Source: Thalia democratica
Taxonomy: Eukaryota
Length of the DNA stretch: 64,000 nucleotides
NCBI GenBank assembly: GCA_965202585.1
Contig: OZ241828.1
Location: forward strand, 40,982,001 to 41,046,000
Direction: 5' to 3'
In this document: positions 1-62,815 of the stretch, piece after piece
How the letters are laid out: every line of letters begins with the position of its first letter
Numbering within the stretch: the stretch's first letter is position 1
Translations under genes and position numbers: made by a program
The notes under the pieces: model-generated
Told to the model about the DNA's origin: nothing
The model's input: only the letters and a program-made list of their open reading frames with translations
Database searches by the model: none

Positions 1-353
1 ATTCGATTGCTCTCTCTTAACTTTTTTCTGTTTGTTTTCAACTGAAAGCTTTTGCTGACCTGGTTTTGTATTACGTTTCGGTTAGCAGTAAATCTCTTTA
101 ACCCAGCCTTGCATGCAATGTAATCTTTAAAGCTATTTTTGTGGTTTTTTGAACAAGGTGTTTTACGGCCGACTACGAATAGTGGCTTCGAAGAAACTAC
201 ATTTCGAACAACTTTGCTTTTCTGACTTCTTACACATCGGTAGCTTCTCAATCTTTTCAACGCAGCCTTGTAATCTTTGAAATTAGATTTTTTTAAATCA
301 TAATCTTTTTGACCGACTACAAATAGTGGCTTCGAAAAAACTTTTCGAACTTT
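1..353 (-). pseudogene. ORF-X 3' fragment (fifth copy, 5' half removed by a deletion junction into hAT)
   Basis: Minus strand reads open as KVRKVFSKPLFVVGQKDYDLKK...LRESNR; homology stops at ~353, where hAT sequence (AAGTAAAAAATCATAG) begins. Confidence 0.85.
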
Positions 354-1359
354 AAAGTAAAAAATCATAGTTGCTGTGAGACTGGTCAAAGTAGTCAAGT
401 TCTTCTAGTAAGGGCTAATAAACTTAAAGCTAAACTACCTAAAAACGATGTTCCCAAAAACTTTTTGTCGTTCTATTCTACATTTAAATATAAAACAAGT
501 GCAAACACTCACGATAGTGAGCAACAGGATTCAGTTGATCAAGAGATTGAGACAGAAATTAAGTTTTTGTTCCTGAAAAAAAATATTTGCTGGAGAAATT
601 AAAGAAGCTGAAGTCTTGTCTTGGTAAAACTCAAACAAGATAAATACACACATCTTGCCAGGTTTGCAAAAAGGTATCTTTCGGCACTACCATTTTCTGT
701 TTATTCTGAAAGGTTATTTTCAGAAGCTGGTAACTTGTGCGAACAAAAGCGAAATCGATTGCTTCCAAAAACTGGCGAAAAACATTTATATCTTTATAGC
801 AACTTGAACAAACAAGAGTAGGTTTCTTTGTAGCTTAATGGCGTTGATACGAGTAAATGTTATTTACTAGATTACTTAATTTTATATTTGTAAACATAAA
901 CAGTTGCTAAAGAACTTATTGTTCATCTTATAGTTCGAACTCACATAAATAAAAGTATAATGTAAAGCTTAAAATAAATAAAGTTAGTCATTTTTTAAAG
1001 CATTGTTACATTTATTTTCTTTTTCTTTTAAGTCATACAAGGTACAAAATTCAACTTTAGTCGTATAAGTAGCTTGTTATTTAACACTTAAACTGAGATT
1101 TCATATAAGTTAGTTTTTTTTTTACAACTTTCTTTTTCCTAGTGTTACAATACAATATTTAGGCAATAACATTTTGTTTTTTTCAACAACTATTACTAAC
1201 TAATGGTATTATGATAATTAGTTTTTATAAGTGTGTTCTTTATCGAAACTACATAAAACATTTAGGATCCGGAACCGGATCCGGCCGGATATTAAATTAA
1301 AAAATAAATGCGGAACCAGATCCGGACAGATTCTAAATAGTGGATCCGTTAGATCACTC
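354..1359 (+). mobile_element. hAT element, 3' part with right TIR
   Basis: ORF 621-821 is the hAT dimerisation domain; right TIR GGATCCGTTAGATCACTC ends at ~1359. Confidence 0.88.
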
Positions 1360-1796
1360 AGTGTTGTATATGTTAGCGACTCAGTAACTGGTTTTTTCTA
1401 TCGTATGAAACATTAGTTGACCTCCAAATTACTGATAAAGATTTTCCCACTATTGGTTCTCAGCTGCCTCATCAGCATTCTAAAACTATTGCAAATTTGA
1501 ATGAAAAAAAAAATCAAAGTGAGCTGAACTCACATGATGTAATCTGTAATTGCCCAACAAGGAGCAAAGTTCCAGAGGGGGCGTAAACGAAGGTTTACAG
1601 CAGAAATTTTCAGCGGAACATGTGCGACGACGTACTGTCGATAAAGAAACCCATAGGAATTGGCCTAAAATAACCCAAGAGATCATTGCGGGGTGGAAAA
1701 CAATAGAAGGAAGGAACCCGTAGGCTTCCAACGAGGTGGTTACAACCCTTTCAAACTACCCTTTAAAAACTATGAAAACAACATGTGAGGATATAG
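1360..1796 (+). mobile_element. Gypsy remnant continuing after the hAT insertion (second copy at 47816-48250)
   Basis: The frame ...KEISCNSV left of the hAT continues as VYVSDSVTGFF..SYETLVDLQITDKDFPTIGS right of the hAT; AGTGTT is duplicated across the insertion. Confidence 0.65.
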
Positions 1797-2529
1797 TTGT
1801 TGTCTTATCTTTAATCTATTGTCTAAAGTTTGACCTAATACTTCATCTTTGAACTAATGACTTAATTTGATTTGAAGTCTCAACGTAAAATCAAAGACAT
1901 AGTGATTGGGTTAAATAAGATAGCTCATGAAGAATAAATCCTTATTTAATTTTATTTATAATATTTATAAACATTAAACGATCTGTAATATACTATAGGT
2001 AATAGATAATGGAATACTATAAAATGAGCTACATAACCCTACAGTTACAGTCTTTTGATGCTAAACATCTAATCATACACAAAATCTAAAAGTAAAAACA
2101 TAAATTATTAAGACAAAAAATATAGTTATGAAAGTTATGTGTATATTCCTGAAACGTTTTACTTTTAAAGCAACACAACAAAGTTTGATTGAAGATTATA
2201 AAAATTAGGTACAAAAATTTATAAAGAATACTAAGCTTTGGACTTTTTTAAAGTTGAAATTAAACAACACTGTTTAAAATCAGGTGTCAACTTTTGTAAA
2301 GTATTTAAATTGTTTTACAAATAGTATATGTTATATATTTTTTGCAGAGATAAATTAATGTAATGCCGTTTATTTTGATAAAATCAACTTTTGATGTACT
2401 TTTTTTTTATAACCTAATATTTTTCTTGAATACTATATACAAGCTTATACAATATTTAAGTGACACAACATTATGGCTTTATCAAAGAAATTAAAGTTTG
2501 CATTAGTTGTATGATTTTAATTTGTTTTA

Positions 2530-2823
2530 TAGTTGATGCACTTTAGTCAATTGGATTGAGTCTCCAGAGATATCTCAATTTTTAACCAATTTCAGCAGAA
2601 AGACCAACGAGCAGGCAGTTGTAAAGTTTAAAAAATATGTGATTTTATTTTTACTTAAAGTTAAGAAAGTAACATATTTTTTAAACTTTACAAAAGGTGC
2701 ATCCGACATAGCTAAAAGTTAGCTATAAAGCTTTCCGTATAAAGAGTTGTAGCTAATGTTTATTAATAATACTGTTTACAATCTAATTTAAATTTAATTG
2801 ATAAAAATTGGCTGCAACTCTTT
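2530..2823 (+). ncRNA. Candidate structured-RNA block of nested hairpins (copies ~24735-25026, ~41759-42049, ~48980-49267)
   Basis: A 22-bp perfect stem at 2619-2693, a 27-bp stem at 2741-2823, smaller stems, and an enclosing GATGCAC/GTGCATC helix. Conserved in all four units. Transcription not shown. Confidence 0.45.
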
Positions 2824-3837
2824 GGAAACATAGTTTCCTTTTCTTTTTAATAAGAAAAACATTTCATTAAACTAATTATAGCGAACTAAAAAAACTTAAA
2901 AAATGTTAATAATTAAACGTCATTAAGCAAAATATACAGTAATAAATATCTTAAGAAGTTAAATAAATACTTTTTTAAACCATTTTAAAGGTAGATGTCT
3001 CGTTTAGTTTATGATCAATAAAAAGTGGTATTTGAATTATTATTTTAGTTTCAAAACATAAGTTAACACAGCGAAAAATTAAAAAAAAAACTCTAGACAA
3101 AGATAACGAACTTTAAATTCATTCTCAAAAACAGCATTTCAATTTAATTTCAAAAATAAAAATTTGTTGCTTTAAAAAAAAAGATTTAAAGAATAATGTT
3201 ACAAAAAATAAGTATATATTTAGTTATATTAAAATAACAGGTTATTTAAAAAATGAAAATATCTTTTAAAAAAGAAAAAAGAAGAATAGGTAGTAAACTC
3301 GGAAAAAAGTATTTTATATGATCAACCAAAATTAAGTTGGTTCTGAAAGTTAAAAATATTAGCATAAGTCTAACAAATTCACTAAAACAATAATTAAAAT
3401 GAATAATTTTATGAATAGAATTAACTAATATTAATTTAAAACTAATAATTTAAACAAATTATATATACATGACTGAAACATTATACATTAGAGGTATTAG
3501 ATATATGCAGGATACGAAAGATATGTTCTAAATTATCAAAAGAAAACAAATTAAAAGCGAATCCTTGACTTTTAAATTATGTTTAGTTTATATTTAGAAA
3601 AACAGCTAGCTAGAAGTATTTTGTTTTTAAAAATTGCACCTTAAACAAAACTATTTTGGTACAGTCACATGTAAAAACTTTGTATTATTGACTAAAATGT
3701 AACATAGTGTAAAAAACATACTAAAATATTTATTTAAAAGTTTTAATAAGTATAGTGCTAAAATTTTGAACTACTAAAGAGAGTTAAATAAAAATAACAG
3801 TGATGTAAACTAACTTGGAGCTTTTTACGATAAACAC

Positions 3838-4695
3838 TTATAATCGTTTTTTAACTCTTTTAATTTGTGTGTTCTCGCATATTCGATTGCTATCTCTTAA
3901 ATTTTTTCTGTTTGTTTTCAACTGAAAGCTTTTGCTGACCTGGGTTTGTTTTACGTTTCGGTTGGTAGTAAACCTCTTTAACCCAGCCTTGCATGCAATG
4001 TAATCTTTAAAGCTGTTTTTGTGGTTTTTTTAACTAGGTGTTTTACGGCCGACTACGAATAGTGGCTTTGAAGAGACTTTCTTTCGAACAACTGTGCTTG
4101 TCTGATTTCTTACACGTCGGTAGCTTCTCAATCTTTTCAACGCAGCCTTGTAATCTTTAAAAACAGATTTTTTTAAATCATAATCTTTTTGACCGACTAC
4201 AAATAGTGGCTTCGAAAAAACTTTTCGAACTTCGCGTTTGTTTTCACCACAACTGTAATGAGGTCCGCACACTTCAGCCATTTCTTTAACCTTTAGCATT
4301 CTAACTTGTTTTTCTTTTATACCAATCCAAGGATCAGAAACGTCAACCAGTGTGACCGAAACGTCATCATCAGCATTTTGGCCTTGAACATAACTTTTGT
4401 TTTCTGCAGCATTTTCTTTGATTGTGGTTGTTTGAACACTGGACGGGAAAGATACTTTCCACTCATGTCGTCTTTTTAACTCATTTGGCAGGTCTTCCTC
4501 GTTTGCATGATCGAGTGTAGGAGTATCGAAATTGAATCTTGTAAATTTCAAAACTAGCCTTTTACGTTTAGCTTGATCTTCATCTGTAGTAATTCTTTTG
4601 CTGCCTCTTTCACATATTCTAAGTGTTGCTTGTGTCTCATCTGTACGTTTTAGCATTTCACCCGAAAAAATCATAGAATTTTGAACAGAAAACAT
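3838..4695 (-). pseudogene. ORF-X copy 1, orphan K/R-rich protein with premature stop
   Basis: Homologous to the open copies. TCA (Ser) is TAA at 4030-4032 and the downstream part stays in frame to the shared stop at 3838-3840. First ATG at 4695. Confidence 0.8.
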
Positions 4696-4798
4696 GGTAT
4701 CACTGTAATAGGTTGCAAGATTATACAAGTATGAAATACAATGTACTTTTGATTTTGTACTTTTTACTAAAAATGAATTTTTAACATAACTTCTTGAC

Positions 4799-4806
4799 TG
4801 ACGTCA
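4799..4806. promoter_or_regulatory. Perfect CRE palindrome TGACGTCA ~104 bp upstream of the ORF-X ATG (also 27010-27017, 43999-44006, 51268-51275)
   Basis: Exact 8-mer in all four copies, while adjacent bases vary. Confidence 0.45.
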
Positions 4807-6339
4807 CAAACAAACTTACTAGATAGCTCCAAATGCATAGTTACAATATTGCTAAAATTAATACTTTTGTATGATAAACTTATGCAATTTTGCAAGTCAT
4901 CGCGTTAAAACGTTTATTCCAAAATAAGGGAGTATTTCAGATATTTTTCTTGACTTAACAACTTCAACGTTTGATTGTTTCTTTATTCTATGTTCTTAAA
5001 GCATATTTTATACAGCATTGTATAGCTGAATTATTCAGCTTGAAAACCTTATGACTTTTTTGAGTCAAAGTTGATTGGGTTGGTGCTAGAACTAATAAAA
5101 AAAAGTAGGATATTTTGGATCTTTCTTAGTTAATTTCACATATCTCAAAGTTTACATACTAAATTTGATAAACATTTTATAAATATAGTCGAGGTTACAA
5201 ACTCTACTGTATAACGTTCCAATAAATTAAAGAAACTTATGTTTTTCGGAATGCTGTTAATTTTAACCTTTTCAATTTTTGTCTTGGATTAAGGTCTTTT
5301 TGCTGGTTTATAAAGTATAAAATTAATTAAGAAACACTAAACAAATAATACTTGTTCGTTAGACAAATACAACTAAAAAAATGTTGTTGAAAATAAATTG
5401 AATCTTTTTTTTGTATATCCTACCAAAAAAAAAAAAAATATCTATAACTTTTTTCAGTTTCTGTTTCATGTCTTCTCAAAAAAAGAATAGTTTTATTATC
5501 TAAAAAAAATTTAAATGGCTAATAAAATGCTCTTATTTGCTTAGTTTTTTTAAAATATTTTTAAAGTAGAGTATTTTTTGAACATGCTAAAAGACCCTAA
5601 TTAAAGACAAAAACTAAAAATATAAATTTGAGATATGATTCATAAACATTTTTTATTTAGCAAACAAATAAAATCGACTTCAACTAACAGTTATCAATTA
5701 CTTTTGTTAGCAACTAATTTTAAAATTAAGTTCTGAGTATGTAAACAGTTAGAGGTTTCATCAGAAAATATTCAATTAATACCAATTAACATAATTAAGA
5801 AAAATTAATTAGAGATAGATTAATAGTTTATAATTACATAATTATAAATAAATTACTTAGTAATTTAACTAAGATAAGCAAATGTATAAATATTAAAGTA
5901 AAACAAACAATAAACATAATAAAATAAGCGACAAACAACAATCATAACTATTTATAAAGATTAGATTTATAAACGTACTTTTGCTTGCACAAATAGGTTT
6001 AAATGTTTTTATAATAATAATGTTAGAAAATAAAGATAATAAAAATTTATATGTTTTTTTTTTGAGATACGTAGACAAACTAAAAAGAGCCAAAACGTCC
6101 CACTTTTACTATGTGATGTAACAATGACCCAATGAATTGTTGTATATTAATATTTTTAAAAGGTTTTTAATTAAAATGAAATATATTTACACAATTGCAA
6201 CAAAATCAAAAAGCACAGTTTTATATAAAAAGTGTAACACAAATAACAATAATGTGAAAGATATTCTGTTTACAGGAATACTCCTAGCTTAATATTTTAG
6301 GCTTTTTCTAGTAAATATCTTGTATTTTGTCGGCTTGAG

Positions 6340-11497: not shown

Positions 11498-11833
<336 letters not shown>

Positions 11834-12087
11834 TAGCCACTAAAAACATATTAAGCATTTGCTAGTTTTTTTAGCACTTTAATTTTAGAATTATTATAAA
11901 GCTTTAAGATCATTTAATAATAAACTAATTTGTATGAATTTTGAACTAACATTGAAAAAAAAAGTTTAGTTGATTAATGCAAATGCATATGCTTTTAAAA
12001 CAAAAAAAAATTCTTTTATTCTAAAGTATTATTATGTACTGTAAATTACCAATACTTAAAAAAATTATGTAGATATTTTTTAATTAG

Positions 12088-12219
<132 letters not shown>

Positions 12220-12922
12220 TAAGTTATTTTTTTTTCCACAGCATGTTACAATGGTCAGTATATAATATCGAGTTCTGGCGTATCATAGCAGGCCATGACT
12301 TTTTTTTTAGGTTTTAGTTATACGTTTATATAATTTGTTACCTCAGTTTGTTTAAACACGTTTGTTTGATCTCAATAAAATTAAAACTTAAAGTTTTTAA
12401 TTTTAAACTTAGTTTAAATTTCTTTGATAGTTTAATATTTTTAGATGACCGTCTTAGTTTTTTGTTTTGACTAAAACTATTAATAATTTTAAGAATTATA
12501 CTTGGAGTATTTGAGAAGATTTATATCAAATGTTTTTTCAGCATCTAAGTCGACACTTCACTCCAGTGTTGTTTCACTACAATCACAATAAAGCAATAAT
12601 TTAAAGCTACAAAAAATACATATTTCTAATATACATTTTAAGAAAAAAATAAGAATTTATTTAACGTATTTGCAACTTTTGTAACTTATTTTTATTAATT
12701 ATACAAATATTTCCCACTTAATTTAGTTCGTTGCTCACGATACTTTACCTTCTTGAAATGTAGCATGAACAAATGTCGAATTATGTATTTAAAACTTGTT
12801 ATTATATTTAGTAAAATTGATAAAAACATATAACCACTTCTATATTTTCGTATCAAATACAGTCTAGTGTACAGTTTATACAAACTTGTTTATACAGTTT
12901 ATCTAAGTTAATGACTTTAGCC

Positions 12923-13169
12923 CAGGGTTTGGAAAACTGCGGTCCGCAAGGTACTTTTAAGCCTAACAATAAAAATGAAAGATTTTGAGGTAGAAATTAA
13001 GCTTTTATATCTAAATAATTAACTATTCTTCACTGGTGCTATATAGATGCTTACTGTATCACGTGTATGGTGAAGATGCTAGTTTTATATTTATTACTAC
13101 AACATTTTAAAAATAATTTCGGCCTACGAGCGACTTTTTTTTTGGCTCATAAAAGGATGCCGACCCTTG
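12923..13169. mobile_element. hAT (Charlie/MER5-like) MITE in HSP70 intron 2 (copy at 56907-57132)
   Basis: Ends CAGGGTTTGGAAAACTGCGGTCCGC and AAAAGGATGCCGACCCTTG; 8-bp TSD CTTTAGCC/CTCTAGCC. Confidence 0.75.
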
Positions 13170-14413
13170 CTCTAGCCTCTGTTAATTTCTTATAAAACGT
13201 TATTTCTTTCTTTTACTTTAGAGCGATGAAAGTTGCTAAAAAAACTGAGTTAGCCTATATAAAAACTATTTTCTGCTGAAGTTTCATTGAGCCCCTCTCA
13301 TCAAAGGTTTGCTCATTACATTTTAGTATTACTAACTAATAATAAACTTTGATTTTCAGTTTGATTATTTTATTTAAATTCTATATTAAACAAGTAAACT
13401 ACTCAGATTTTCAAGAGAAACCTGTCTCACTAAAAAATGAGTATTTTTAAGTCGGACAGTGGATAAAGCTCGCCTTTTAAAGTAAACTTTATCTATTTAA
13501 ATTTTTATTATTAGTATTATATGTTTAAAAGTATAACTCAAAATACAGCCAAAAAGTAATTTTTAAGACAATTATTTTCTTAATCAAATTTTACATACCG
13601 TCTTGTTTTTTCATCTATAATGTAAAAAATATAGACTCACCTAGGTATAAACTAAAAAACGACTCAAGCTTAAAAGTTCTAATTTCACATTGAATTCCAG
13701 GCGAGGATTTCGACAACCGCATGGTGGACTTCTTCATGAACGAGTTCAAAAGAAAGCACAACGCTGACATGAGCGCGAACAAGCGCGCGGTGAGAAGGCT
13801 GCGCACCGCGTGCGAGAGGGCGAAAAGGACAATTTCGTCGTCCACCCAGGCCAGCATTGAAATCGATTCGCTGCACGACGGAATCGACTTCTACACCAGC
13901 ATCACGCGAGCCCGCTTCGAAGAGCTGTGCAACGATCTTTTCAAAGCCACGTTGGCGTCAGTTGAAAAAGCGCTTGTCGATGCTAAGCTGGACAAAAACA
14001 AAGTTTGAAATGTTCTTTCTTGGTGTGAATAAACTTGTCTGTTTAGAAATTGTCCAAGCATATAAGTAAAGTACAATTTTTTTACGACTTCTACAACTTC
14101 AGTTGCAAAAGTTTTTTTTTTCTAATATAGGTATGTAGTTAATTTTAGTTTTAATTATGATACTTTAAGACTAATATATATAACTTAAAAGTTGGTTTAA
14201 TTTGTTGTACAGTTGTTTTCTAAAAAATCTATTAAGTCAGTCGAAATGTAAAATCCATAGCTTGTTGTTTCATAAATTTAAATATAATTTTAAACACAGT
14301 TCAACACTACTTTATATTATTAAATTAAGTATTTTAAAATAGTTTTAATTAAAGTAAAGTGAGTATAATTCGTGCAAGAATGATAAGTATAGTAAGGTGG
14401 TTTTAGTTTGTAA

Positions 14414-14913
14414 CAGGGACGTAGCTAGCTCGAAAAATTTACGAATCTGCAAAATACAAAAAACAACAGGCACGACGCATGATGGCGTAATACGAAGTAC
14501 AGGGCACTTTGTGCTACCTCTAATGTTACTGTTATTTATCGAGTTGCTCCTGGTTTTATTCATTTGTTTTAATATTCTCGTGTTGTAGTGAATTTTTAAT
14601 TCATATTCTTTCACATTTAAAAAATCTGTAGCTTATTTTTTTTTAAATTGTATTGCTTTATGATAAAGAGAATCTGAGCTGAGTTAAATATATATAATTT
14701 TAAGCTATTTAATTTGCTTAAATTTTTAGACACTACAAGTGATATAGAGTGTTTATATTTCAATATTATCTATCAGAAGGGCAAAACTAAATATTAAAAA
14801 GCTAAGAAAGCAGGGTTTTTTAAGCTAAAGAATTGATACAAAATCTTGTTTTTTTTTTGCAAAATTATATAGGTTTCTGCAGGTTTGCAGAAACGTACCA
14901 AGCTACGTGCCTG
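14414..14913. mobile_element. 500-bp hAT-type MITE in HSP70 intron 3 (copies at 31353-31856 and 58381-58885)
   Basis: TIR CAGGGACGTAGCT and AGCTACGTGCCTG; perfect 8-bp TSD GTTTGTAA; subterminal 9-bp hairpin GTTTCTGCA-GGTT-TGCAGAAAC. Confidence 0.85.
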
Positions 14914-15031
14914 GTTTGTAATGAACCGTTAACTTAGAAGTTGTCTTAGCAAACAAACTTTCTTCAATTTGATTTGTAATTTTCTAAAATTTAGCTAAAT
15001 GTTTTAAATATTGCCTAAAGTAATTGCTTAA

Positions 15032-15403
<372 letters not shown>

Positions 15404-18400
15404 TAATATTTTGTATTTTTTTGCTTTTTTTTTTACTGGAGGTATAAAGAAGTCCTTAGTAAAAGCTCAATACAATTTGATTTTTAGTTTTAAAAAGTTG
15501 CATGGCAAAACATAAACAAAAGTATCAGCTGGTTTTTCAACAGGTGTTCGAAGGAGAAAGAACGTTGACCAAAGACAACAATCTGCTGGGAAAGTTCGAG
15601 TTATCTGGAATTACACCGGCTCCCAGGGGTGTGCCGCAAATCGAAGTTACATTTGACGTGGATGTCAATGCAATTTTAAATGTTTCTGCAGTTGACCGAA
15701 GCACCGGAAAGAAAAACAACATCAAAATAACCAATGACAAAGGTTGTAAATACTTTATTAGCTTCAGGAAGATATTTCTATTTGTATGAAATTTGATATT
15801 ATTTTTATTTGTTTCTAGCCTTTTTCAATACGTTTTATAGAAACTACATTTATATTGTGTTAAAATGTTACTCATCATAAATATTATAAGTAAAAAACTA
15901 TAAGAATAGAAGTTTGTTTGTTTAGTTTATGTTTTAAAGATTATGATTTTTATTGTTAATTTTAGAGTATAAAGAGGTATTTTACATGTTGATCTCATTT
16001 TCAAGATCTTTGACTTATTTAACAATTAGTTTTTAGCACTTTTTTTAATTTAAACTAGTTTTTGAGATAAAAGACTAAAAATTCGAAAAATTAAATGGAT
16101 TCCCTAAGGAAACTTTAAGTAGACTATTCCATTGCAAATATATCTTCTACAGTTTTCTTTCAATCCTACAAGAATGTAAAGTAAACTTATCAAAAAATAT
16201 GATATTTATAGTTTATTGAACGACAAAAAAAGACGCTCAAAAGATTTGGTCCTAGGACCTGGTGTACGAAGAGCCTTTCGGTTATCGATTTCCACACCAC
16301 GGATACCTTTTAACGTCTTGTCCAGGAAAAATTATAGTGAACATATTTTGTTCTAATCACAAAAGACTTCGTGTAATTAATACGTAAAGGATACAAATAA
16401 ACAACTTATCAGTTGTTTTAATACCTCTTTAAAACATTTGAAGATATTTTTTTTAGGTCGCTTAACAAAAGAGGAAATAGATAGAATGGTTAAAGATGCG
16501 GAAAGATACAAACAACAGGACGAACAGTTGAGAGACAGCATGCTTGCAAGGACCAATTAAGAATCTTACGTGTTCAGTTTGAAACAGATTTGTGAAGATG
16601 ATGTGTTGAAAGATAAGCTTTCAGAAGCTGAACAAAACTTGCTCATTCAAAAAGTTTATATTTTAATAATTTTCCGACATATATATGTACATTGTTAAAC
16701 TGTAAGAAGTATCTTTTTAAAGGTAAAATAAATTGTTAGGCACATTCAATAAAAGTGTATTGAATTTGTATTGTAGAGTTACTTTTTTCTTTGAGAATTT
16801 ACTTAAAGGTAGACACAACTTTTACACTTATCTTAACTTGAATTAGTTTTCTTGTTATATATAAATCTCTACAGTCTAATGAAGCAGAAAGTTGGTTGTC
16901 ATCAAATACTGAAGCAAAGAAAAGTGAACTGTTATTGAAATTCAAAGAGCTTGAACAAATTGCATATCCATAATGACTAGATTACATCAGAAAGGAGCCA
17001 CCGGTTTGATTATTTCATTTTAATTTTAAAAGTTTTATCATCAATATTGTTTTATCAATACAAATAACTTAGAATAATGATAATATAGCTTAGTTATTAT
17101 TATCGTATATTAGCATACTACTTTTCTGCTGAAATATAGCAAATATACAAACATGTTTACTAACTATCTATTGGTTGCACTTACTTTGATTTATATACCG
17201 ACAACTAAAATTTCGGCAATTTGAATGCTGAGTTATTTAGAATTATCTCTATTAAGTATATTTTCATCATTGTTAGTTACTGTCAAATTCTTTTATAATT
17301 GAACGTTTTATTACGAATTTTATTTTATTATTGAGTTTCAAAAGAATCTTTGATATATAGGTAAATAAGTTTTCAACCTTACTAGAAAATGGCTATTTTA
17401 AACAAATATGAGTAATCTTTTATAAAAATTATTAAAAATTGTTTTGCCTTCATTATCTTTATTAATTGCATTTAAATGGTATATTTTAATTTTTGAAATT
17501 TCATATGGCCTTTTCAAAAGTCTTTTTGTTATTTAGCCCTCCCCCGCTCTAAAATATTACTTTGTTTTACCAAAAGTTTTTCCACATTCTCTTAGTCTGT
17601 ATTTAAAGTTAATATAAAGCATAAAGTTCAGATTTTAAGGTGCTTTATTTGTTTACAGTAGTAAACGTACTTTGAGAAAATACGGAGCTGGTTTTATGAT
17701 CAGTACTAGTTTTATATAAACTTAGCTTTTTTTTTAATCTTCATGTACTCAATTATGTTTTTTATTACAAGTTTCTATGTTTCATTTAGAACTTTTTGTT
17801 TAAGCTTTTCAAATCATTTTTATTTCATTATCATTATGTATTTAGAGCTTTTAGGCCAGTTTGAGGTTTCTTTAAAAAAATAACAGTAAATTAGACTTTG
17901 TCTTGTTTTTAAAGTACTCTTGCTCGATTAATGTAAGTTATTTGAACTGGAAAAAGTTATCTTGGTTGTAGATCAAGTATTTTTTTATAGAATCCTAATT
18001 AGTTTTATCAAGTAATTGGAGGCATAAGAGAATAATTTCTACTTGCTACTATATTTTTCCTATAACCATTTAAAATAGATGAGTATTTGAAAAACAAGGT
18101 TTGTTTGGCAATTAAATACGCCCCTGTATGAACTCCAACGATAACATTTAGAAATTTGACAAACTTTTATGCCGAGCAAGTGTTTAGCCTTTTGTCTAGT
18201 TTTAAAGCTGATTAATATTAGTTTTTTATGATTTTAATTTAAACGCATTTCGATTTATCAAAATACTAAAAAACTTGTACTTAACTAAATAATAATAACA
18301 AACTCATGAATTGTTTCCTTTTAACTTATCTTATTAAGGCTGTGTAGTAGAAACAGGCATTGATGGTTTTTTTGGATTAGCTCATGCACTTTTAGTAACT

Positions 18401-23537: not shown

Positions 23538-26042
23538 GATAAGGTTTTGGAAATTTTGTATACATAATATTAAGCAAATGAGGTGAAGTATAAATACAGC
23601 AGTTAATTTATATTATCTGAACCTATCCCTAACCAATTTTACCCAAAAATTTTGATCTGTACCCTTTTCAAAACATATAACAAATAAATTAAATAATATA
23701 TATATTTAAAACTTAAAACAAAGCTATGTAAAATTTTAGCCAATCAGAAGCGTCGAGAATTTGCAACTGATAGGATGAGCGTCGCTCTGATTCTAAATTA
23801 GACATTTGTTACTAACTAAAAGAGATCGGTATTCCCAGACTTTCAGGGTTAGCGTTTCTGAACTCTTTAATCATCTTTTATAAAACGCCTCTTCTTTAAT
23901 CTTTCTCTGCATTATCAAACTGCTGGTTTGGAGAACAAGTGAAACTTGTTTAAAAATAATAAACTATTCCGCAGCTGACGTCCATATATCGTTCTAGCTG
24001 GTGACTTAATAATCTTTTTTTGAGTGTTTTTCAGATGAAGCATCTCACCTAAGAACATACCGATTTTGTAACTACAACAAAGTTTTTGTCTTATCTTTGA
24101 TCTATTGTCTCATGTTTGACTTAGTTTTTCGTCTTTGAACTAATGACTTAATTTTGGATTGAAGTGTTAACGTAGAATCAAAGACATAGTGATTGGGTTG
24201 AATAAGATAGCTCATAAATAAAATCGATAAAATGAGCTACATAACCCTACAGTTACAGTGTGTTGATGCTGAGCATCTAATTATATTTAAAATTTTAAAG
24301 TAAAAGCATAAATTATTAAGACAAAAAATATAGTTATGAAAGTTATTTGTATATACCTAAAACGTTTTACTTTTAAAGTAAACAACAAAGTTTGATTAAA
24401 GATTATAAAAATTAGATACAAAAATTTTTAAAGAATACAAAGCTTTGAATTTTTTTTAAAGTTGAAATTGAACAACACTGTTAAAAACCAGGTGTTAACT
24501 TTTGTAAAGTATTTAAATTATTTTACAAATAGTATATGTTATATTTTTCGCAGAGATAAATTAATGTAATGCCGTTTATTTTTATAGAAAACAAATTTTG
24601 ATGTACTTTTTTTTTTACCTAATGTTTTTCTTGAATACTATATACAAGCTTATACAATATTTAAGTAACACAACATTATGGTTTTATCAAAGAAAATAAA
24701 GTTTGCATTAGTTGTATGATTTTAATTTGCTATATAGTTGATGCACTTTAGTCAATTGGTTTGAGTCTCCAGAGAGATCTCAATTTTTAACCAATTTCAG
24801 CAGAAAGACCAACGAGCAGGCAGTTATAAAGTTTAAAAATATGTAATTTTATTTTTACTTAAAGTTAAGAAAGTAACATATTTTTAAACTTTACAAAAGG
24901 TGCATCCGACATAGCTAAAAGTTAGCTATGAAGCTTTCCATATAAAGAGTTGCAGCTAATGTTTATTAAAATTAATGTTTACAATCTAATTAAAATTTAA
25001 TTAATAAAAATTGGCTGCAACTTTTTGGAAACTTAGTTTCCTTTTCTATTTAATAAAATAAACATTTTATTAAACTAAATATAACGACTTAAAAAAACTT
25101 AAGAAATGTTAATAATTAAACGTCCTTGATGAAAAATCTAATTTTATAAAATTGTTAAAAAGCTAAATAAGTACTTTTTTAAGCCATATTAAAGGTAGTT
25201 GTCTAGTTTAATTCAAGAATATTAATAAAAAGTGGTATTTAAACTATTAACTATTTAAGTTTCAAAACATAAGTTAACACAGCAAGAAAAAAAGAACTCT
25301 AGACAAAGAAAACGAACTTTAAATAAAATCTCAAGAACAACATTTCAATTTAATTATTAAAATAAAAATTTGTTGCTTGTTTACAGAAAAAAAAAATTAT
25401 AGAATTGTGTTACAAATAATAAACATTTATTTTGTTATATTATAATAACAGATTATTTCAAAACTGACATTATCTTTAAAATAAAAAAGCAAAAAATAGT
25501 TTGTTAAATGTTAGATAGTAAATAAGAATCAAAGTCTATAATATGATTAACAAAAATTAAATTGATTCTGAAAGTTAAAAAATAATAGTATAAGTCAAAC
25601 AAAATCACTAAAACAATAATTAAAATAAATAATTTTTGAATAAACTTAACTAACATTTTAAAACTAATAACTTAAGCAAACAATCTATACATGTAAGAAA
25701 AATTACATACTAGAGCTATTAGATATATGCAGGATACAAAAAATATGTTCTAAGTTATCAAAAGGAAACAAATTGAAAGCAGATCCATGAGTATAAGTTA
25801 TATTTTAAGCTAGCTAGAAGTCTTTTGTTTTTTAAAATTACAACTTAAAAAAAAACTATTTTAGTACAAACACATGAAAAAAACGTTGTGTTATTGATTA
25901 AAATACATCAAAGTGAGAAAAACGTACTGAAAAAATTATTTAAAACTTTTAATACGTATAGTGCTAAAATTAAGTACTACTGAAGAGAGTTAAATAAAAT
26001 AACAGTGATGTAAACTAACTTGGAGCTTTTTACGATAAACAC

Positions 26043-26906
26043 TTATAATCGTTTTCTAACTCTTTTAACCTGGGTGTTGTTGCATATTCGATTGCTCTCT
26101 CTTAACTTTTTTCTGTTTGTTTTCAACTGAAAGCTTTTGCTGACCTGGTTTTGTATTACGTTTCGGTTGGTAGTAAATCTCTTTAACCCAGCCTTGCATG
26201 CAATGTAATCTTTAAAGCTGTTTTTGTGGTTTTTTGAACAAGGTGTTTTACGGCCGACTACGAATAGTGGCTTTGAAGAGACTTCTTTTCGAACAACTGT
26301 GCTTTTCTGACTTCTTACAAGTCGGTAGCTTCTCAATCTTTTCAACGCAGCCTTGTAATCTTTAAAAAGAGTTTTCGATTTGTTTAAACCATAATCTTTC
26401 TGACCGACTACAAATAGTGACTTCGAAAAAACTTTTTGAACTTTGCGTTTGTTTTCACCACAACTGTAATGAGGTCCGCACACTTCAGCCATTTCTTTAA
26501 CCTTTAGAATTCTTACTTGTTTTTCTTTTATACCAATCCAAGGATCAGAAACGTCAACTAGTGTGACCGAAACGTCATCATCAGCATTTTGGCTTTGAAC
26601 ATAACTTTTGTTTTCTGTAGCATTTTCTTTGATTGTGGTTGTTTGAACACTGGACGGGAAAGATACTTTCCACTCATGTCGTCTTTTTAACTCATTTGGC
26701 AGGTCTTCCTCGTTTGCATGATCGAGTGTAGGAGTATCGAAATTGAATCTTGTAAATTTCAAAACTAGCCTTTTACGTTTAGCTCGATCTTTATCTGTAG
26801 TAATTCTTTTGCTGCCTCTTTCACATATTCTAGGTGTCGCTTGTGTCTCATCTGTACGTTTTAGCATTTCACCCGAAAAAATCATAGAATTTTGAATAGA
26901 AAACAT
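26043..26906 (-). CDS. ORF-X copy 2, uncharacterised basic protein (287 aa from first ATG)
   Basis: An 864-bp open frame in very AT-rich DNA, conserved in 4 copies, with an internal repeat (KPLFVVG...FKDY). No family recognised. Could instead be a terminal exon (TATTACAG acceptor-like sequence just upstream). Confidence 0.7.
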   Translation of the reverse strand: MFSIQNSMIFSGEMLKRTDETQATPRICERGSKRITTDKDRAKRKRLVLKFTRFNFDTPTLDHANEEDLPNELKRRHEWKVSFPSSVQTTTIKENATENKSYVQSQNADDDVSVTLVDVSDPWIGIKEKQVRILKVKEMAEVCGPHYSCGENKRKVQKVFSKSLFVVGQKDYGLNKSKTLFKDYKAALKRLRSYRLVRSQKSTVVRKEVSSKPLFVVGRKTPCSKNHKNSFKDYIACKAGLKRFTTNRNVIQNQVSKSFQLKTNRKKLRESNRICNNTQVKRVRKRL

Positions 26907-30215: not shown

Positions 30216-30301
30216 ATATTATTGTTTGTTTTTGTTGTTATTATATATACTTATTTAATTAAACAATTTTTTTTTTGTGTAAAAGCAATTAAAGTGTGTA
30301 A

Positions 30302-36059
<5,758 letters not shown>

Positions 36060-40490: not shown

Positions 40491-43074
40491 GATAAGATTT
40501 TAGAAATTTTGTATACATAATATTATGCAAATGAGGTAAAGTATAAATACAGCAGTTAATTAATATTATCTGAACCTATCCTTAACCAATTTTACCCAAA
40601 AATTTTGATCTGTATCCTTTTCAAAACTAATAACAGTAAATTAAAAGAATATATATATTTAAAACTTAAAACAAAGCTATGTAAAATTTTAGCCAATCAG
40701 AAGCACCGAGAATTTGCAGCTGATAGGATGAGCGTCGCTCTGATTCTAAATAAGACATTTGTTACTAACTAAAAGAGATCGGTATTCCCAGACTTTTAGT
40801 GTTAGCGTTTCTGAACTCTTTAATCATCTTGTATAAAACGCCTCTTCTTTAATCTTTCCTCTGCATTATCGAACTGCTGGTTTGGAGAACAAGTCAAACT
40901 TGTTTAAAAATAATAAACTATTCCGCAGCTGACGTCCATATATCGTTCTAGCTGGTGACTTAATAATCTATTTTTGAGTGTTTTTCAGATGAAGCATCTC
41001 ACCTAAAAACATACCGATATTGTAACTACAACAAAGTTGTTTTCTTATCTTTGATCTATTGTCTCATGTTTGACTTAGTTTTTCGTCTTTGAACTAATGA
41101 CTTAACTTTGACTTGAAGTCTTAACGTAGAATCAAAGACATAGTGATTGGGTTGAATAAGATAGCTCATGAAGAATAAATCCTTATTTAATTTCATTTAG
41201 ATTATTTATAAACATTAAACAATCTGTAAAAATAATAGATAATCGAACACGATAAAGTGAGCTAAATAACCCTACAGTTACAGAGTTTTGATACTAATCA
41301 TCTAATCATACACAAAATTTAAAAGGATAACGTAGATTATTAAGACAAAAAATATATTTTTGAAAGTTATTTGTATATTCCTAAAACGTTTTACTTTTAA
41401 AGCAACACAACAAAGTTTGGTAAGAGATTATAAAGATTAGGTACAAAAAAATTATAAAGAAAACTAAGCTTTGAACTTTTTAAAAGTTGAAATTAAACAA
41501 CACTGTTAAAAAAGCAGGTGTTAACCTTTGTAAAGCATTTAAAATAGTATATGTTATATTTTTTGCAGAGATAAATTAATGTAATGCCGTTTATTTTTAT
41601 GAAAAACAACTTCTGATGTACTTTTTTTTTAACCTAATGTTTTTCTTGAATACTATATACAAGCTTATACAATATTTAAGTAACACAACATTATTATTTC
41701 ATCAAAGAAATTAAAGTTTGCGTTAGTTGTATGATTTTAATTTATTTTTATTGATTATAATTGATGCACTTTAGTCAATTGGATTGAGTCTCCAGAGAGA
41801 TCTCAATTTTAAACCAATTTCAGCAGAAAGACCAACGAGCAGGCAGTTGTAAAGTTTAAAAATATGTAATTTTATTTTTACTTCAAGTTAAGAAAATGAC
41901 ATATTTTTAAACTTTACAAAAGGTGCATCCGACATAGCTAAAAGTTAGCTATGAAGCTTTCCATATTAAGAGTTGCAGCTAATGTTTATTGATAATACTG
42001 TTTACAATCTAATTTAAATTTAATTAATAAAAATTGGCTGCAACTCTTTGGAAACATAATTTCCTGTTCTTTTTAACAAAATAAACATTTCATTAAACTA
42101 AATATAACGACCCAAAAAAAACATAAGAAATATTAATAATTAAACGTCATTGATGCAAAATTTACTGTAATAAAAATGTTAAAAAGCTTAATAAGTACTT
42201 TTTTAAGCCACATTAACGGTATTAGTCTAGTTTATTTGAAGAATATTAATAAAAAGTGGTATTTAAGTTATTAACTATTTTAGTTTCAAACATAAATTAA
42301 CAAAGCAAAAAAAAAAAAAACTCTAGACAAAGAAAACGAACTTTATATAAATTTTCAAGAACAACATTTCAGTTTAATTATTAAAATAAAAATTTTTGCT
42401 TGTTTACAAAAAAGAATATTTATAGAATTATGTTACATACAATAAACATTTATTTAGTTATATTATAATAAAAGATTATTTCAAAACTGTCAATATCTTT
42501 CAAAAAAGAAAGCAAATAATAGTCAGTTAAATGTTAGATAGTAAATTCGGATCAAAGTATACTATATGATTAACAAAAAAAAATCTATTCTGAAAATTTC
42601 AAAATAATTGTATGAGTCAAACAAAATCACAAAAACAATAATTAAAAATAAATATTTTTATGAATAAAATCAACTAACAGCAATTTGAAACTAATAATTT
42701 AAACAAATTATCTATACATGACTGAAACATTATACATTAGAGCTATTAGATATATGCAGGATACAAAAGATATGTTCTAAATTATCAAAAGAAAACAAAT
42801 TAAAAACAGATCCATAAAGTTTAAATTTTATTTTAAGCTAGCTAGAAGTATTTTGTTTTATAAAATTACAACTTCAAAAAAAAAAACTATTTTAGTACAA
42901 TCACATGAAAAAAACGTTGTGTTATTGATTAAAATACATCAAAGTGAGAAAAACGTACTGAAAAGTTTATTTAAAACTTTTAATACGTATAGTGCTAAAA
43001 TTAAGTACTACTGAAGAGAGTTAAATAAAAATAACAGTGATGTAAACTAACTTGGAGCTTTTTACGATAAACAC

Positions 43075-43896
43075 TTATAATCGTTTTCTAACTCTTTTAA
43101 TCTGTGTGTTCTCGCATATTCGATTGCTCTCTCTTAACTTTTTTCTGTTTGTTTTCAACTGAAAGCTTTTGCTGACCTGGGTTTGTATTACGTTTCGGTT
43201 GGTAGTAAATCTCTTTAACCCAGCCTTGCATGCAACGTAATCTTTAAAGCTGTTTTTGTAGTTTTTTGAACAAGGTGTTTTACGGCCGACTACGAATAGT
43301 GGCTTCGAAGAAACTTCTTTTCGAACAACTGTGCTTTTCTGACTTCTTACACATCGGTAGCTTCTCAATCTTTTCAACGCAGCCTTGTAATCTTTAAAAA
43401 CAGATTTTTTTAAATCATAATCTTTCTGACCGACTACAAATAGTGGCTCCGAAAAAACTTTTCGAACTTCGCGTTTGTTTTTACCACAATTGTAATGAGG
43501 TCCGCACACTTCAGCCATTTCTTTAACCTTTAGAATTCTTACTTGTTTTTCTTTTATACCAATCCAAGGATCAGAAACGTCAACTAGTGTGACCGAAACG
43601 TCAGCATTTTCTTTGATTGTGGTTGTTTGAACACTGGACGGGAAAGATACTTTCCACTCATGTCGTCTTTTTAACTCATTTGGCAGGTCTTCCTCGTCTG
43701 CATGATCGAGTGTAGGAGTATCGAAATTGAATCTTGTAAATTTCAAAACTAGCCTTTTACGTTTAGCTTGATCTTTATTTATATGAACTTTAGTTCTTTT
43801 GCTGCCTCTTTCACATATTCTAGGTGTTGCTTGTGTCTCATCTGCACGTTTTAGCATTTCACCCGAAAAAATCATAGAATTTTGAACAGAAAACAT
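43075..43896 (-). CDS. ORF-X copy 3 (273 aa; in-frame 14-codon deletion)
   Basis: Open frame; KENA|DVSVTL versus KENAAENKSYVQGQNADDDVSVTL in copy 1. Confidence 0.7.
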   Translation of the reverse strand: MFSVQNSMIFSGEMLKRADETQATPRICERGSKRTKVHINKDQAKRKRLVLKFTRFNFDTPTLDHADEEDLPNELKRRHEWKVSFPSSVQTTTIKENADVSVTLVDVSDPWIGIKEKQVRILKVKEMAEVCGPHYNCGKNKREVRKVFSEPLFVVGQKDYDLKKSVFKDYKAALKRLRSYRCVRSQKSTVVRKEVSSKPLFVVGRKTPCSKNYKNSFKDYVACKAGLKRFTTNRNVIQTQVSKSFQLKTNRKKLRESNRICENTQIKRVRKRL

Positions 43897-45708
43897 GGTA
43901 TCACTGTAATAGGTTGCAAGATTATACAAGTTTGAAATACAAGCTACTTTTGATTTTGTACTTTTTCTAAAAATGAATTTTTAACATAACTTTTCGACTG
44001 ACGTCACAAATAAACTTACTAGATAGCTCCAAATGCATAGTTACAATATTGCTAAAATTAACACTTTTGTATGATAAACTTATGCAATTTTGCAAGTCAT
44101 CGCCTTAAAACGTTTATTCCAAAATCAGGGCGTATATCAGATATTTTTCTTGACTTAACAACTTCAACGTTTAATTGTTTCTTTATTCTATGTTCTTAAA
44201 GCATATTTTATACAGCATTGTATAGCTTAATTATTCAGCTTGAAAACCTTATGACTTTTTTGAGTCAAAGTTGATTGGGTTGGTGCTAGAACTAATAAAA
44301 AAAGTAGGATATTTTGGATCTTTCTTAGTTGATAAATATCTCAAAGTTTACATACTAAATTTAATAAATATTTTTTAAATATAGTTGAGGTTACAAACTC
44401 TACTGTATAACGATCCAATAAATTAAAGAAACTTATGTTTTTTCGGAATACTGTTAATTTTAACCTTTTCAATTTTTGTCTTTGATTAAGGTCTTTTTGC
44501 TGGTTAATAAAGTATAAAATTAATTAAGAAACACTAAACAAATAATACTTTTTGTTAGACAAATACAACTAAAAAAATTTTTTAAACGTAAATTGAATAT
44601 TTTTTTTGAATATACTACCAAAACTAAAAAAAAAAAAAATATTTATAACTATTTTCAGTTTCTGCTCATGTCTACTCAAAAAAGAATAGTTTTATTATCT
44701 AAAAAAAAGTTCAAATGCTTTATAAAATGGTCTTATTTGCTTAGTTTTTTAAATATTTTTAAAGTAGAATATTTTTTGAACATGCTAAAAGACCCTAATT
44801 AAAGATAAAAATTGAAAATAGAAATTTGAGACATGATTCGTTCAAAAACTTTTTTATTAAGCAAATAAATAAAATCGATTTCAACTAACAGTTATCAATT
44901 ACTTTTGTTAGCAACTAATTTTATAATTAAGTTCTGAGTATGTAAACAGTTAGAGGTTTCATCAGAAAATATTCAGTTAATACCAATTAACATAATTAAG
45001 AAAAGTTAATTAGAGATAGATTAAAAGTTTATAAATACATAATTATAAATAAATTACTTAGTAATTTAACTAAGATAATCAAATGTATAAATATAAAAGT
45101 AAAACAAACAATAAACATGATAAAATAAGCGACAAAAAACGATCATAACTATTTAAAAAGATTAGATTTATAAACGTACTTTTGCTCGCAAAAATAGGTT
45201 TAAAAGTTTTTATAATAATAATGTTAGAAAATAAAGATATTAAATTTTTTTTTTTTTTGAGATACGTAGACAAACTAAAAAGAGCCAAAACGTCCCACTT
45301 TTTCTATGTGATGTAACAATGACCCAATGAATTGTTGTATATTAATATTTTTTAAAGGTTTTTATAAAAATGAAATATATTTACACAATTGCAACAAAAT
45401 CAAAAAGCATATTTTTATAAAAAAAGTGTAACACAAATAAAATTAATGTGAAATATATTCTTTTTACTGGAATACTCTAGGTTAGTATTTTAGGCTTTTT
45501 CTAGTAAATATCTTGTATGTTGTCGGCTTGAGCTCATCAATACAATTCTTTTATTAATGCAATCTTTATTTTGATAGAGTATTGTTAAGGTTCCCATTAA
45601 ACAGTTTGCAGGTATGCTAATAAAATTCCTGTAATTATTTAAGGCACTTTTATAGCTACTTTAAGTGTAACGTGTCTAAAGAACAATGAAATCAGCTGCA
45701 ATAATGTT

Positions 45709-47815: not shown

Positions 47816-50300
47816 AGTGTTATCTATGTTAGCGACTCAGTAGCTGTTTTTTTCTATCGTATGAAACATTAGTTGACCTCCAAATTACTGATAAAGATTT
47901 TCCCACTATTGGTTCTCAACTGCCTCATCAGCATTCTAAAGTTATTGCAAATTTGAATGAAAAAAAAATCAAAGTGAGCTGAACTCACATGATGTAATTT
48001 GTAATTGCCCAACAAGCAGCAAAGTTCCAGAGGGGGCGTAAACGAAGGTTTACAGCAGAAATTTTCAGCGGAACATGTGCGACGACGTACTGTCGATAAA
48101 GAAGCCCATAGGAATTGGCCTCAAAATAACCCAAGAGATCATTGCCGGGTCGGAAAACAATAGAAGGAAGGAACCCGTAGGCTTCCAACAAAGTGGTTAT
48201 AACCCTTTCAAACTACCCTTTAAAAACTATGAAAACAACATGCGAGGATAGAGTTGTTGTCTTATCTTTATCTATTGTCTAAAGTTTGACCTAATACTTC
48301 ATCTTTGAACTAATGACTTGATTTGATTAGAAGTCTCAACGTAAAATCAAAGACATAGTGATTGGGTTGAATAAGATAGCTCATGAAGAATAAATCCTTA
48401 TTTAATTTTATTTATATTATTTATAAACATTAAACGATCTGTAAAATACTATAGGTAATAGATAATGGAATACTATAAAATGAGCTACATAACCCTACAG
48501 TTACAGTCTTTTGATGCTAACCATCTAATCATACACAAAATCTAAAAGTAAAAACATAAATTATTAAGACAAAAAATATAGTTATGAAAGTTATTTGTAT
48601 ATTCCTAAAACGTTTTACTTTTAAAGCAACACAACAAAGTTTGATTGAAGATTATAAAAATTATGTACAAAAATTTATAAAGAATACTAAGCTTTGAACT
48701 TTTTAAAGTTGAAATTAAACAACACTGTTAAAAACCAGGTGTTAACTGTGGTAAAGTATTTAAGTTGTTTCAAATAGTATATGTTATACTTTTTGCAGAG
48801 ATAAATTAATGTAATGCCGTTTATTTTGATAAAATCAACTTTTGATGTACTTTTTTTTATAACCTAATGTTTTTTTTGAATACTATATACAAGCTTATAC
48901 AATATTTAAGTAACACAACATTATGGTTTTATCAAAGAAATTAAAGTTTGCATTAGTTGTATGATTTTAATTTGTTTTATAGTTGATGCACTTTAGTCAA
49001 TTGGTTTGAGTCTTCAGAGAGATCTCAATTTTAAACCAATTTCAGCAGAAAGACCAACGAGCAGGCAGTTGTAAAGTTTAAAAAATATGTGATTTTATTT
49101 TTACTTAAAATTGTAACATATTTTTTAAACTTTACAAAAGGTGCATCCGACATAGCTAAAAGTTAGCTATGAAGCTTTCCATGTAAAGAGTTGCAGCTAA
49201 TGTTTATTAATAATACTGTTTACAATCTAATTTAAATTTAATTAATAAAAATTGGCTGCAACTCTTTGGAAACATAGTTTCCTTTTCTTTTTAATAAAAA
49301 AAACATTTCATTAAACTAACTATAGCGAACTAAAAAAACTTAAAAAATGTTAATAATTAAACGTCATTAAGCAAAATATACAGTAATTAATATCTTAAGA
49401 AGCTAAATAAATACTTTTTTAAACCATTTTAAAGGTAGTTGTCTCGTTTAGTTTACGATCAATAAAAAGTGGTATTTGAATTATAATTTTAGTTTCAAAA
49501 CATAAGTTAACACAGCAAAAAATTAAAAAAAAACTCTAGACAAAGATAACGAACTTTAAATTCATTCTCAAAAACAGCATTTCAATTTAACTTCAAAAAT
49601 AACAATTTTTTGCTTAAAAAAAAAAAAAGATTTAAAGAATAATGTTACAAAAAATAAGTATATATTTAGTTATATTAAAATAACAGATTATTTAAAAAAT
49701 GAAAATATCTTTTAAAAAAGAAAAAAAAAAAGAATAGTTAGTAAAATGATAGGTAGTAAACTCGGAAAAAAGTATTTTATATGATCAACCAAAGTTAAGT
49801 TGGTTCTGAAAGATAAAAATATTAGCATAAGTCAAACAAAATCACTAAAACAATAATTAAAATAAATAATTTTATGAATAGAATTAACTAATATTAATTC
49901 AAAACTAATAATTTTAACAAATTATATATACATGACTGAAACATTATACATTAGAGGTATTAGATATATACAGGATACGAAATATATGTTCTAAATTATC
50001 TAAAGAAAACAAATTAAAAGCGAATCCTAGACTTTTAAATTATGTTTAGTTTATATTTAGAAAAACAGCTAGCTAGAAGTATTTTGTTTTTAAAAATTAC
50101 ACCTTAAACAAAACTATTTTGGTACAGTCACATGTAAAAACTTTGTATTATTGACTAAAATGTATCATAGTGTAAAAAACTTACTAAAAAATTTATTTAA
50201 AAGTTTAAATAAGTATAGCGCTAAAATTTTGAACTACTAAAGAGAGTTAAATAAAAATAACAGTGATGTAAACTAACTTGGAGCATTTTACGATAAACAC

Positions 50301-55725: not shown

Positions 55726-55808
55726 TATTATTGTTTGTTTTTGTTGTTATTATATATACTTATTTATTTAAACAATTTTTTTTGTGTAAAATCAATTAAA
55801 GTGTGTAA

Positions 55809-62815
<7,007 letters not shown>

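Follow-up and report, generated by a model that had tools for sequence, protein, structure and literature searches.

The 22-bp hairpin at 2619-2693 (HP22) was found to be one of the seven helices of a far longer conserved element (2533-2838; about 300 nt), which recurs in roughly thirty copies across the genome of Thalia democratica. We favor, with moderate confidence and on the evidence of sequence comparison, a joint reading in which HP22 is a selectively maintained helix of variable length in a structured non-coding element, and in which that element is transcribed from the minus strand as part of a 3′-UTR exon. The initial annotation had singled out the hairpin as the feature in question. 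The helix is real, and the sequences that flank it are more constrained than the stem itself.

The arms of HP22 (2619-2640 and 2672-2693) are 22 nt each and fully complementary, as had been reported from reading the sequence, and enclose a 31-nt loop (2641-2671). The hairpin is statistically real: its folding energy is -25.8 kcal/mol (z = -6.07 on the plus strand and -7.29 on the minus strand), and none of 200 shuffled sequences folded as well. The window (the whole 64-kb stretch of DNA that was analyzed) contains five perfect inverted repeats of 16 bp or more that enclose a short loop, compared with 0.03 expected from first-order Markov simulations. Four of the five are HP22 and its paralogous copies at 24824-24896 (unit 2), 41847-41919 (unit 3), and 49069-49137 (unit 4), and the only other one is a (TA)n microsatellite at 60650-60700. 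The differences described earlier among the four units were all confirmed. The arms carry A6/T6 runs in units 1 and 4 and A5/T5 runs in units 2 and 3, the loop of unit 4 is 6 nt shorter with A6/T6 kept, and a G-to-A substitution at the third stem position of unit 2 (copy L003) gives an A-C mismatch on the plus strand and a G-U pair on the minus strand.

The window corresponds to C4:40982001-41046000 of an AT-rich 801-Mb assembly (about 28% GC), contains no N runs, and is built from two alternating units: one of ~7 kb, which carries HP22 and occurs four times, and one of 15-17 kb, which occurs three times and holds a multi-exon HSP70 gene. The HSP70 gene is thus repeated three times in tandem (approximately 11537-15789, 30269-32746, and 55776-59776). 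The stretches 400-1200 and 5600-6000 showed a summed depth 10-50 times that of their surroundings in public DNA unitig sets, and are therefore high-copy repeats, presumably transposon fragments. Three public runs compared with positions 1-6000 of the window consisted of DNA unitigs that covered everything and provided no informative joints. A genome search with the 201 nt around the hairpin revealed about 30 full copies and a few fragments on C4, C8, C2, C6, and C449, with identities of 69-96%, and the identical set was returned when a diverged copy served as the query.

Homology between the C4-type and C8-type subfamilies is limited to 2533-2838 and the adjoining open reading frame (ORF), and these borders, drawn on an alignment of 29 genomic copies, define the element, for which the minus strand is proposed. 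The fold of the whole element is more stable than expected on either strand (z = -6.5 plus, z = -5.0 minus), and an RNAalifold consensus of 17 representative copies returned the same seven-helix architecture on both. Read in the plus sense, the 5′ domain (2535-2591) comprises the first strand of the closing helix P1 (2535-2541 with 2697-2703), helix HB (2549-2554 with 2586-2591), and hairpin hp1 (2556-2560 with 2574-2578). P1 adjoins the base of HP22 and is predicted on both strands, with no covariation; HB shows a replacement of U-A in 15 copies by C-G in 10, and in hp1 a G-C pair was replaced by A-U twice independently. Next to HP22 on its 5′ side stands block A (2596-2618), an invariant 23-mer that is single-stranded in every fold. 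Block B, a nearly invariant stretch of 41 nt (2696-2736), begins 2 nt past HP22 and holds both the 3′ strand of P1 and helix hp3 (2708-2715 with 2719-2726), in which 97.8% of the cells are paired. The remaining domain (2741-2838) contains hairpin hp4 (2741-2753 with 2811-2823), with 13 conserved base pairs, 93.8% of cells paired, and a G-C to A-U replacement in three copies, and a terminal hairpin (2824-2829 with 2833-2838). The hp4/terminal-hairpin motif also has one match outside the known copies, with three mismatches, at C2:45540611-45540634 on the minus strand, near genes of the longer paralogue type.

The degree of conservation differs widely along the element. Block A was found at 31 places within three mismatches in the 801-Mb genome, all of them family copies and 19 of them exact; within the same limit, no further place was found for which block A could serve as an antisense guide or target. 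It carries zero or one change in 25 of the 29 aligned copies, two or three in L026 and L027, and a 12-nt deletion in L030, and block B carries zero to three changes in 26 of the 29. HP22 is the least conserved part, with 6-30 changes in 74 columns. Its stem is 22 bp in one subfamily and 13-18 bp in others, its inner helices are subfamily-specific, and even among well-preserved copies the inner stems and loops cannot be aligned between subfamilies.

The HP22 region is considered non-coding because a 44-codon minus-strand ORF that runs through it is broken in most copies; used as a query for contigs from elsewhere, the corresponding 44-aa pseudo-ORF gave no match. Block B, on reading the sequence, has stop codons in all plus-strand frames. 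No family of Rfam release 15 matched at its gathering threshold, and at E values of up to 10 only microRNA and snoRNA models appeared, at 14-23 bits against thresholds of 46-140; a tRNA scan found none. Hammerhead, H/ACA, C/D, snRNA, 7SK, MRP, and telomerase RNAs were considered and dropped, either because the defining boxes are absent or because internal T-runs or copy number do not fit. A full-text literature search for block A gave no match. An invariant 21-mer is absent from JGI metagenome contigs and viral contigs, and a protein-guided metagenome scan revealed no relative; contigs from ENA/TARA with homologous ORFs either end 36-120 nt short of the element or are without it.

Wherever the ORF is still recognizable, each copy of the element is convergent with a single-exon ORF of about 287 aa at a distance of 1-1.8 kb, and among the ~30 genomic copies no well-preserved element was found without such an ORF nearby. 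In unit 1 the ORF (3838-4728, minus strand) is shortened by a premature stop at 4030, so that 4030-4728 remains. Intact ORFs occupy 26046-26906 and 50304-51164, with another long one of 284 aa at 43075-43929, all on the minus strand. The encoded protein is basic, has an internal repeat, and belongs to no Pfam family; it had no Atlas neighbor, exact-protein look-ups of the window's own ORFs gave no match, and its matches among 1.8 billion cluster representatives numbered only 29, all unnamed. Full-length homologues with 43-90% identity are present in marine (TARA) metagenomes. Within the genome, the family forms a tandem superfamily with at least 87 matches on C1, C2, C4, C6, and C8. Between C4-type and C8-type copies, the ORFs have about 66% identity in DNA and encode proteins with only ~45% identity. 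Blocks A and B match at approximately 100% between the two types, which makes the element the most constrained part of the locus. The two blocks are conserved even beside frameshifted ORFs, in keeping with a function that is independent of the protein being made.

Several signals suggest that the element is the spliced, 3′-terminal untranslated exon of the adjacent minus-strand orphan gene, a proposal that we regard as somewhat probable. A donor-like motif stands 37 nt past the stop codon (exon end at 3815, with GT following). All paralogues and the relatives from marine metagenomes share it without change, and homology stops just past it. In longer relatives (387-418 aa), the ORF remains open right up to the motif. 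In one of them, L074, the motif comes after an intron of about 70 nt and an in-frame exon of 57 nt (4800-4935), which marks the motif as a probable exon-intron boundary of the family. L074 itself is a frameshifted member of about 400 aa, in which the 57-nt penultimate exon is followed by a second donor and, about 1.25 kb further on, by a degenerate element; in relatives of this kind, the conserved motif just before the donor includes the stop codon. An alternative donor directly after the stop (GT at ~3826) was rejected, as it reads AT in several paralogues. In old paralogues, the stretch 3791-3867 of the minus strand, which takes in the final ~25 bases of the reading frame, the stop region, and the 37-nt untranslated segment, is conserved in DNA well above the rest of the coding sequence.

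Downstream of the donor on the minus strand, the element is the only further conserved block. In 28 of 29 copies, homology begins again at an AG. It ends at an AATAAA within 0-4 nt in most non-C4 copies, and in most C4 copies an ATTAAA stands 13 nt beyond the end of homology. Read this way, the element lies on the gene's strand and downstream of the gene, between an acceptor and a poly(A) signal; its transcription, strand, and splicing are inferred from these position-conserved sequence signals. For unit 1, the gene model would consist of a coding exon that extends to 3815 (37 nt past the stop-codon position of the intact copies), an intron of ~980 nt (2838-3814, with donor GT at 3814-3813 and acceptor AG at 2839-2838), and an untranslated exon from 2837 to approximately 2533, followed by the poly(A) signal. 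Transcripts whose stop codon precedes the final exon junction by less than 50 nt escape nonsense-mediated decay, as expected where a 3′-UTR intron is tolerated, and the distance of 37 nt fits this rule. The substitution in unit 2, a G-U pair when read on the minus strand, is in keeping with the same strand.

Other features speak against the minus strand. At position -3 the putative acceptor carries an A, and it is directly preceded by a run of purines in C4-type copies. The consensus fold is 6 kcal/mol better on the plus strand (-58.6 vs -52.6 kcal/mol). Cells compatible with G-U pairing favor the plus strand overall (85, vs 36 that read A-C) and in the well-preserved copies (44 vs 12). In well-preserved copies, hp4 has G-U variants solely on the plus strand. 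This hairpin, with its closing U-G pair, accounts for most of the excess, whereas helix HB leans the other way, so that counted helix by helix the wobble-pair evidence is mixed. Mutational asymmetry gave no usable signal of strand. On the plus strand, a TATA-like motif lies 60-105 nt upstream of the element and an AATAAA or ATTAAA 4-28 nt downstream; these motifs are plausible on either strand, since such AT-rich signals are near-palindromic.

One possibility that these observations raise is that the element is an independent plus-strand non-coding RNA gene of about 350-400 nt, convergent with the ORF gene, driven by the TATA-like promoter and ending past the terminal hairpin, in which HP22 would play the same architectural role. 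Its attractions are the G-U counts, especially those of hp3 and hp4, the stabler plus-strand fold, the conserved positions of the flanking motifs, and the persistence of blocks A and B, far more conserved than the protein, beside frameshifted ORFs. Against such a gene, every well-preserved copy of the element has an ORF nearby, and the conserved donor past the stop codon would be left without a conserved downstream exon. The wobble counts of HB point in the opposite direction, the Rfam search up to an E value of 10 yielded nothing beyond chance matches to microRNA hairpins, and no Sm-type site was seen on reading the sequence. We therefore consider an independent plus-strand gene unlikely, if the most credible of the alternatives.

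Whichever strand may be transcribed, the alignment bears on whether the stem is under selection, as the initial annotation had proposed. Pairs were counted on a hand-drawn structure laid over the 29-copy alignment. Paired cells amount to 89.4%, and to 33-50% when the partners are slid by one to three columns. The covariation score of 0.108 (0.084 in shuffles) and the 48 cells changed on both sides (26 expected) were each reached by none of 500 shuffles. The counts of pairs and pair types were not significant (14 pairs vs 12.1, with 14 reached by 107 of 500 shuffles), and the support is accordingly attributed to a few events inherited by clades. Within HP22, two two-sided substitutions separate subfamilies: at columns 106/164, 14 copies have U-A and 12 have A-U, and at columns 109/161, 14 have A-U and 7 have C-G. 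Of the 21 well-preserved copies, 20 retain 11 bp or more at the base of the stem, with hairpin energies of -14 to -27 kcal/mol, and the remaining one, L016, has 7 and 8 bp around one mismatch. In L022-L030, by contrast, the stem is absent or weak, and the ORFs are frameshifted, fragmentary, or missing. Pairing thus appears to have been kept by two-sided changes in more than one lineage, which supports a selected RNA helix, the events being few. Of the earlier proposal, the maintenance of the basal stem, the two-sided substitutions, and the decay in dead copies stand in its favor, and the small number of covariation events stands against it.

The difference in run length had been interpreted as a compensatory indel, with both arms changing length together. 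This interpretation was not borne out by a maximum-likelihood tree of the 13 C4 copies, from which the hairpin columns were left out. The tree places A6/T5 with a 1-nt bulge as the ancestral state, which is still present in L004 and in L011-L013; the latter three form the outgroup clade of the tree and share with L004 a left run that is longer than the right. One T was gained in the clade of units 1 and 4, and one A was lost in that of units 2 and 3. These single-base indels are independent of each other, each removes the bulge and restores perfect register, and no lineage of the tree has a change that worsens it. As a signal of selection they are suggestive only, because in such slippage-prone runs the chance probability of this outcome is about one in four. 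The loss of the stem alongside decayed ORFs is more telling.

Matched changes can also arise without selection on an RNA fold. Template-switch mutations can create or perfect hairpins, and can produce matched changes in both arms in a single event; HP22 resembles such hairpins in the matched changes in its arms and in the perfect stems of its young copies. A two-base left-arm variant of L005, a young C4 copy, recurs in the distant outgroup clade L011-L013, which suggests that the variant was transferred by gene conversion or arose by templated mutation. The matched changes could have originated in template switching or in conversion between the arms. In a stronger version of this idea, the palindrome would be preserved as DNA, through template switching or arm-to-arm conversion or as part of a regulatory DNA module. 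The matched changes in slippage-prone A/T runs, the recurrent left-arm variant, and wobble pairs that favor neither strand clearly would all agree with it. Unlike the product of a template switch, though, the run lengths of HP22 derive from two separate single indels in different clades, and the stem has been kept over a long divergence. Its persistence across paralogues with ~45% identical proteins, together with its decay in dead copies, is the signature of purifying selection; the six other helices of the element behave likewise, and the arms tolerate G-T pairs. Maintenance at the DNA level is thus judged improbable, and selection on the helix remains the reading that we prefer.

The position of the hairpin between two nearly invariant flanks could also be explained if HP22 were itself a plus-strand intron of about 75 nt, running from the GT at 2621 to the AG at 2695-2696 with paired ends, either mirtron-like or acting as a hairpin that juxtaposes the splice sites of ultra-conserved exons. 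A GTAAAG is found 2 nt into the left arm and an AG 2-3 nt past the right arm, and introns of ~70 nt do exist in this genome. Mirtrons and tailed mirtrons are hairpin introns, and HP22 is like them in its length, in its stem of ~22 bp, and in the pairing of its 5′ GT with the region just before the AG. Of the 29 copies, 28 have the AG. The GT, by contrast, is mutated in four copies whose neighboring blocks are invariant: unit 2 (L003), which is otherwise intact, and L022, L025, and L026. HP22 further differs from mirtrons in its 31-nt loop and in that a plus-strand host transcript is hypothetical, and the microRNA models of Rfam score far below threshold on the element. Conservation of the arms extends over 11-13 nt, beyond the requirements of splice signals, the sole putative branch point is ~6 nt from the AG and hence too close, no retrocopy with block A spliced to block B was found in the genome, and the evidence from gene structure favors the other strand. 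An intron at this position therefore seems very unlikely. A spliced-leader RNA gene was compared as well. Block A followed by GT resembles an exon with its donor, and the family is multi-copy, but the GT is not invariant and no Sm-binding site of the form RAU(3-6)GR was seen in the element sequence; a literature search on spliced leaders in salps found nothing relevant.

That the stem might be the terminal inverted repeat pair of a dispersed MITE, as the initial annotation had allowed, has nothing beyond the inverted repeat itself to recommend it and can be dismissed, given that an arm-gap-arm pattern search of the 801-Mb genome found nine places (seven family copies and two unrelated, chance ones), that all BLAST and 23-mer matches are family copies with shared flanks, only ~30 in number, and that the arm flanks form no direct repeat and hence no target-site duplication.

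Returning to the minus-strand exon with a selected stem, a structural role for HP22 can be proposed. The hairpin would stack on the closing helix P1 and, together with a second arm made up of HB and hp1, form a three-way junction that keeps the 23 nt of block A next to the 41 nt of block B at the foot of the stem. The invariant blocks might then serve as the recognition surface for a protein or RNA factor. The role of the stem would be architectural, that of a spacer or scaffold helix whose closure matters and whose sequence does not. This reading draws on the free variation of loop length and inner-stem sequence, as seen in the loop deletion of unit 4 and in stems of 22 bp vs 13-18 bp. More speculatively, the element may represent a new structured-RNA family, in which a three-way junction presents an invariant 23-nt strand and the constraint exceeds that on the adjacent orphan protein. 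It could then act on its own, for example as an RNA partner or regulator of the basic protein, instead of being a passive UTR, and the coding part would be a dispensable passenger in some copies. We put this forward tentatively, as a possibility of rather low probability.

Structured cis-elements in 3′-UTRs, with several stem-loops and compensatory change, are exemplified by the localization signal of the bicoid 3′-UTR, and stems bound by Staufen are ~19 bp long. The Thalia element resembles these in having several helices in a proposed untranslated region and in keeping its pairing while the stem sequence drifts. It also shares with them a long, near-perfect duplex next to a conserved single-stranded flank, with the helix apparently acting as a scaffold. 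In contrast, it has no sequence or family relationship to the bicoid and Staufen elements, and its binding factor, strand, and transcription are predictions. It also differs in being common to ~30 fast-evolving paralogues and, as proposed, in occupying an exon of its own behind a 3′-UTR intron.

The finding is modest in itself, and elements of this kind are already known. The family nevertheless provides a natural series for studying how a helix is maintained, with perfect, bulged, shortened, and lost stems as well as two register-restoring indels. To our knowledge, almost nothing is known about RNA regulation in pelagic tunicates. If the minus-strand reading is correct, some 30 copies of a fast-diverging, lineage-restricted gene would share a near-frozen, structured untranslated exon, which would point to strong common post-transcriptional control, through localization, stability, or translation, in a pelagic tunicate.
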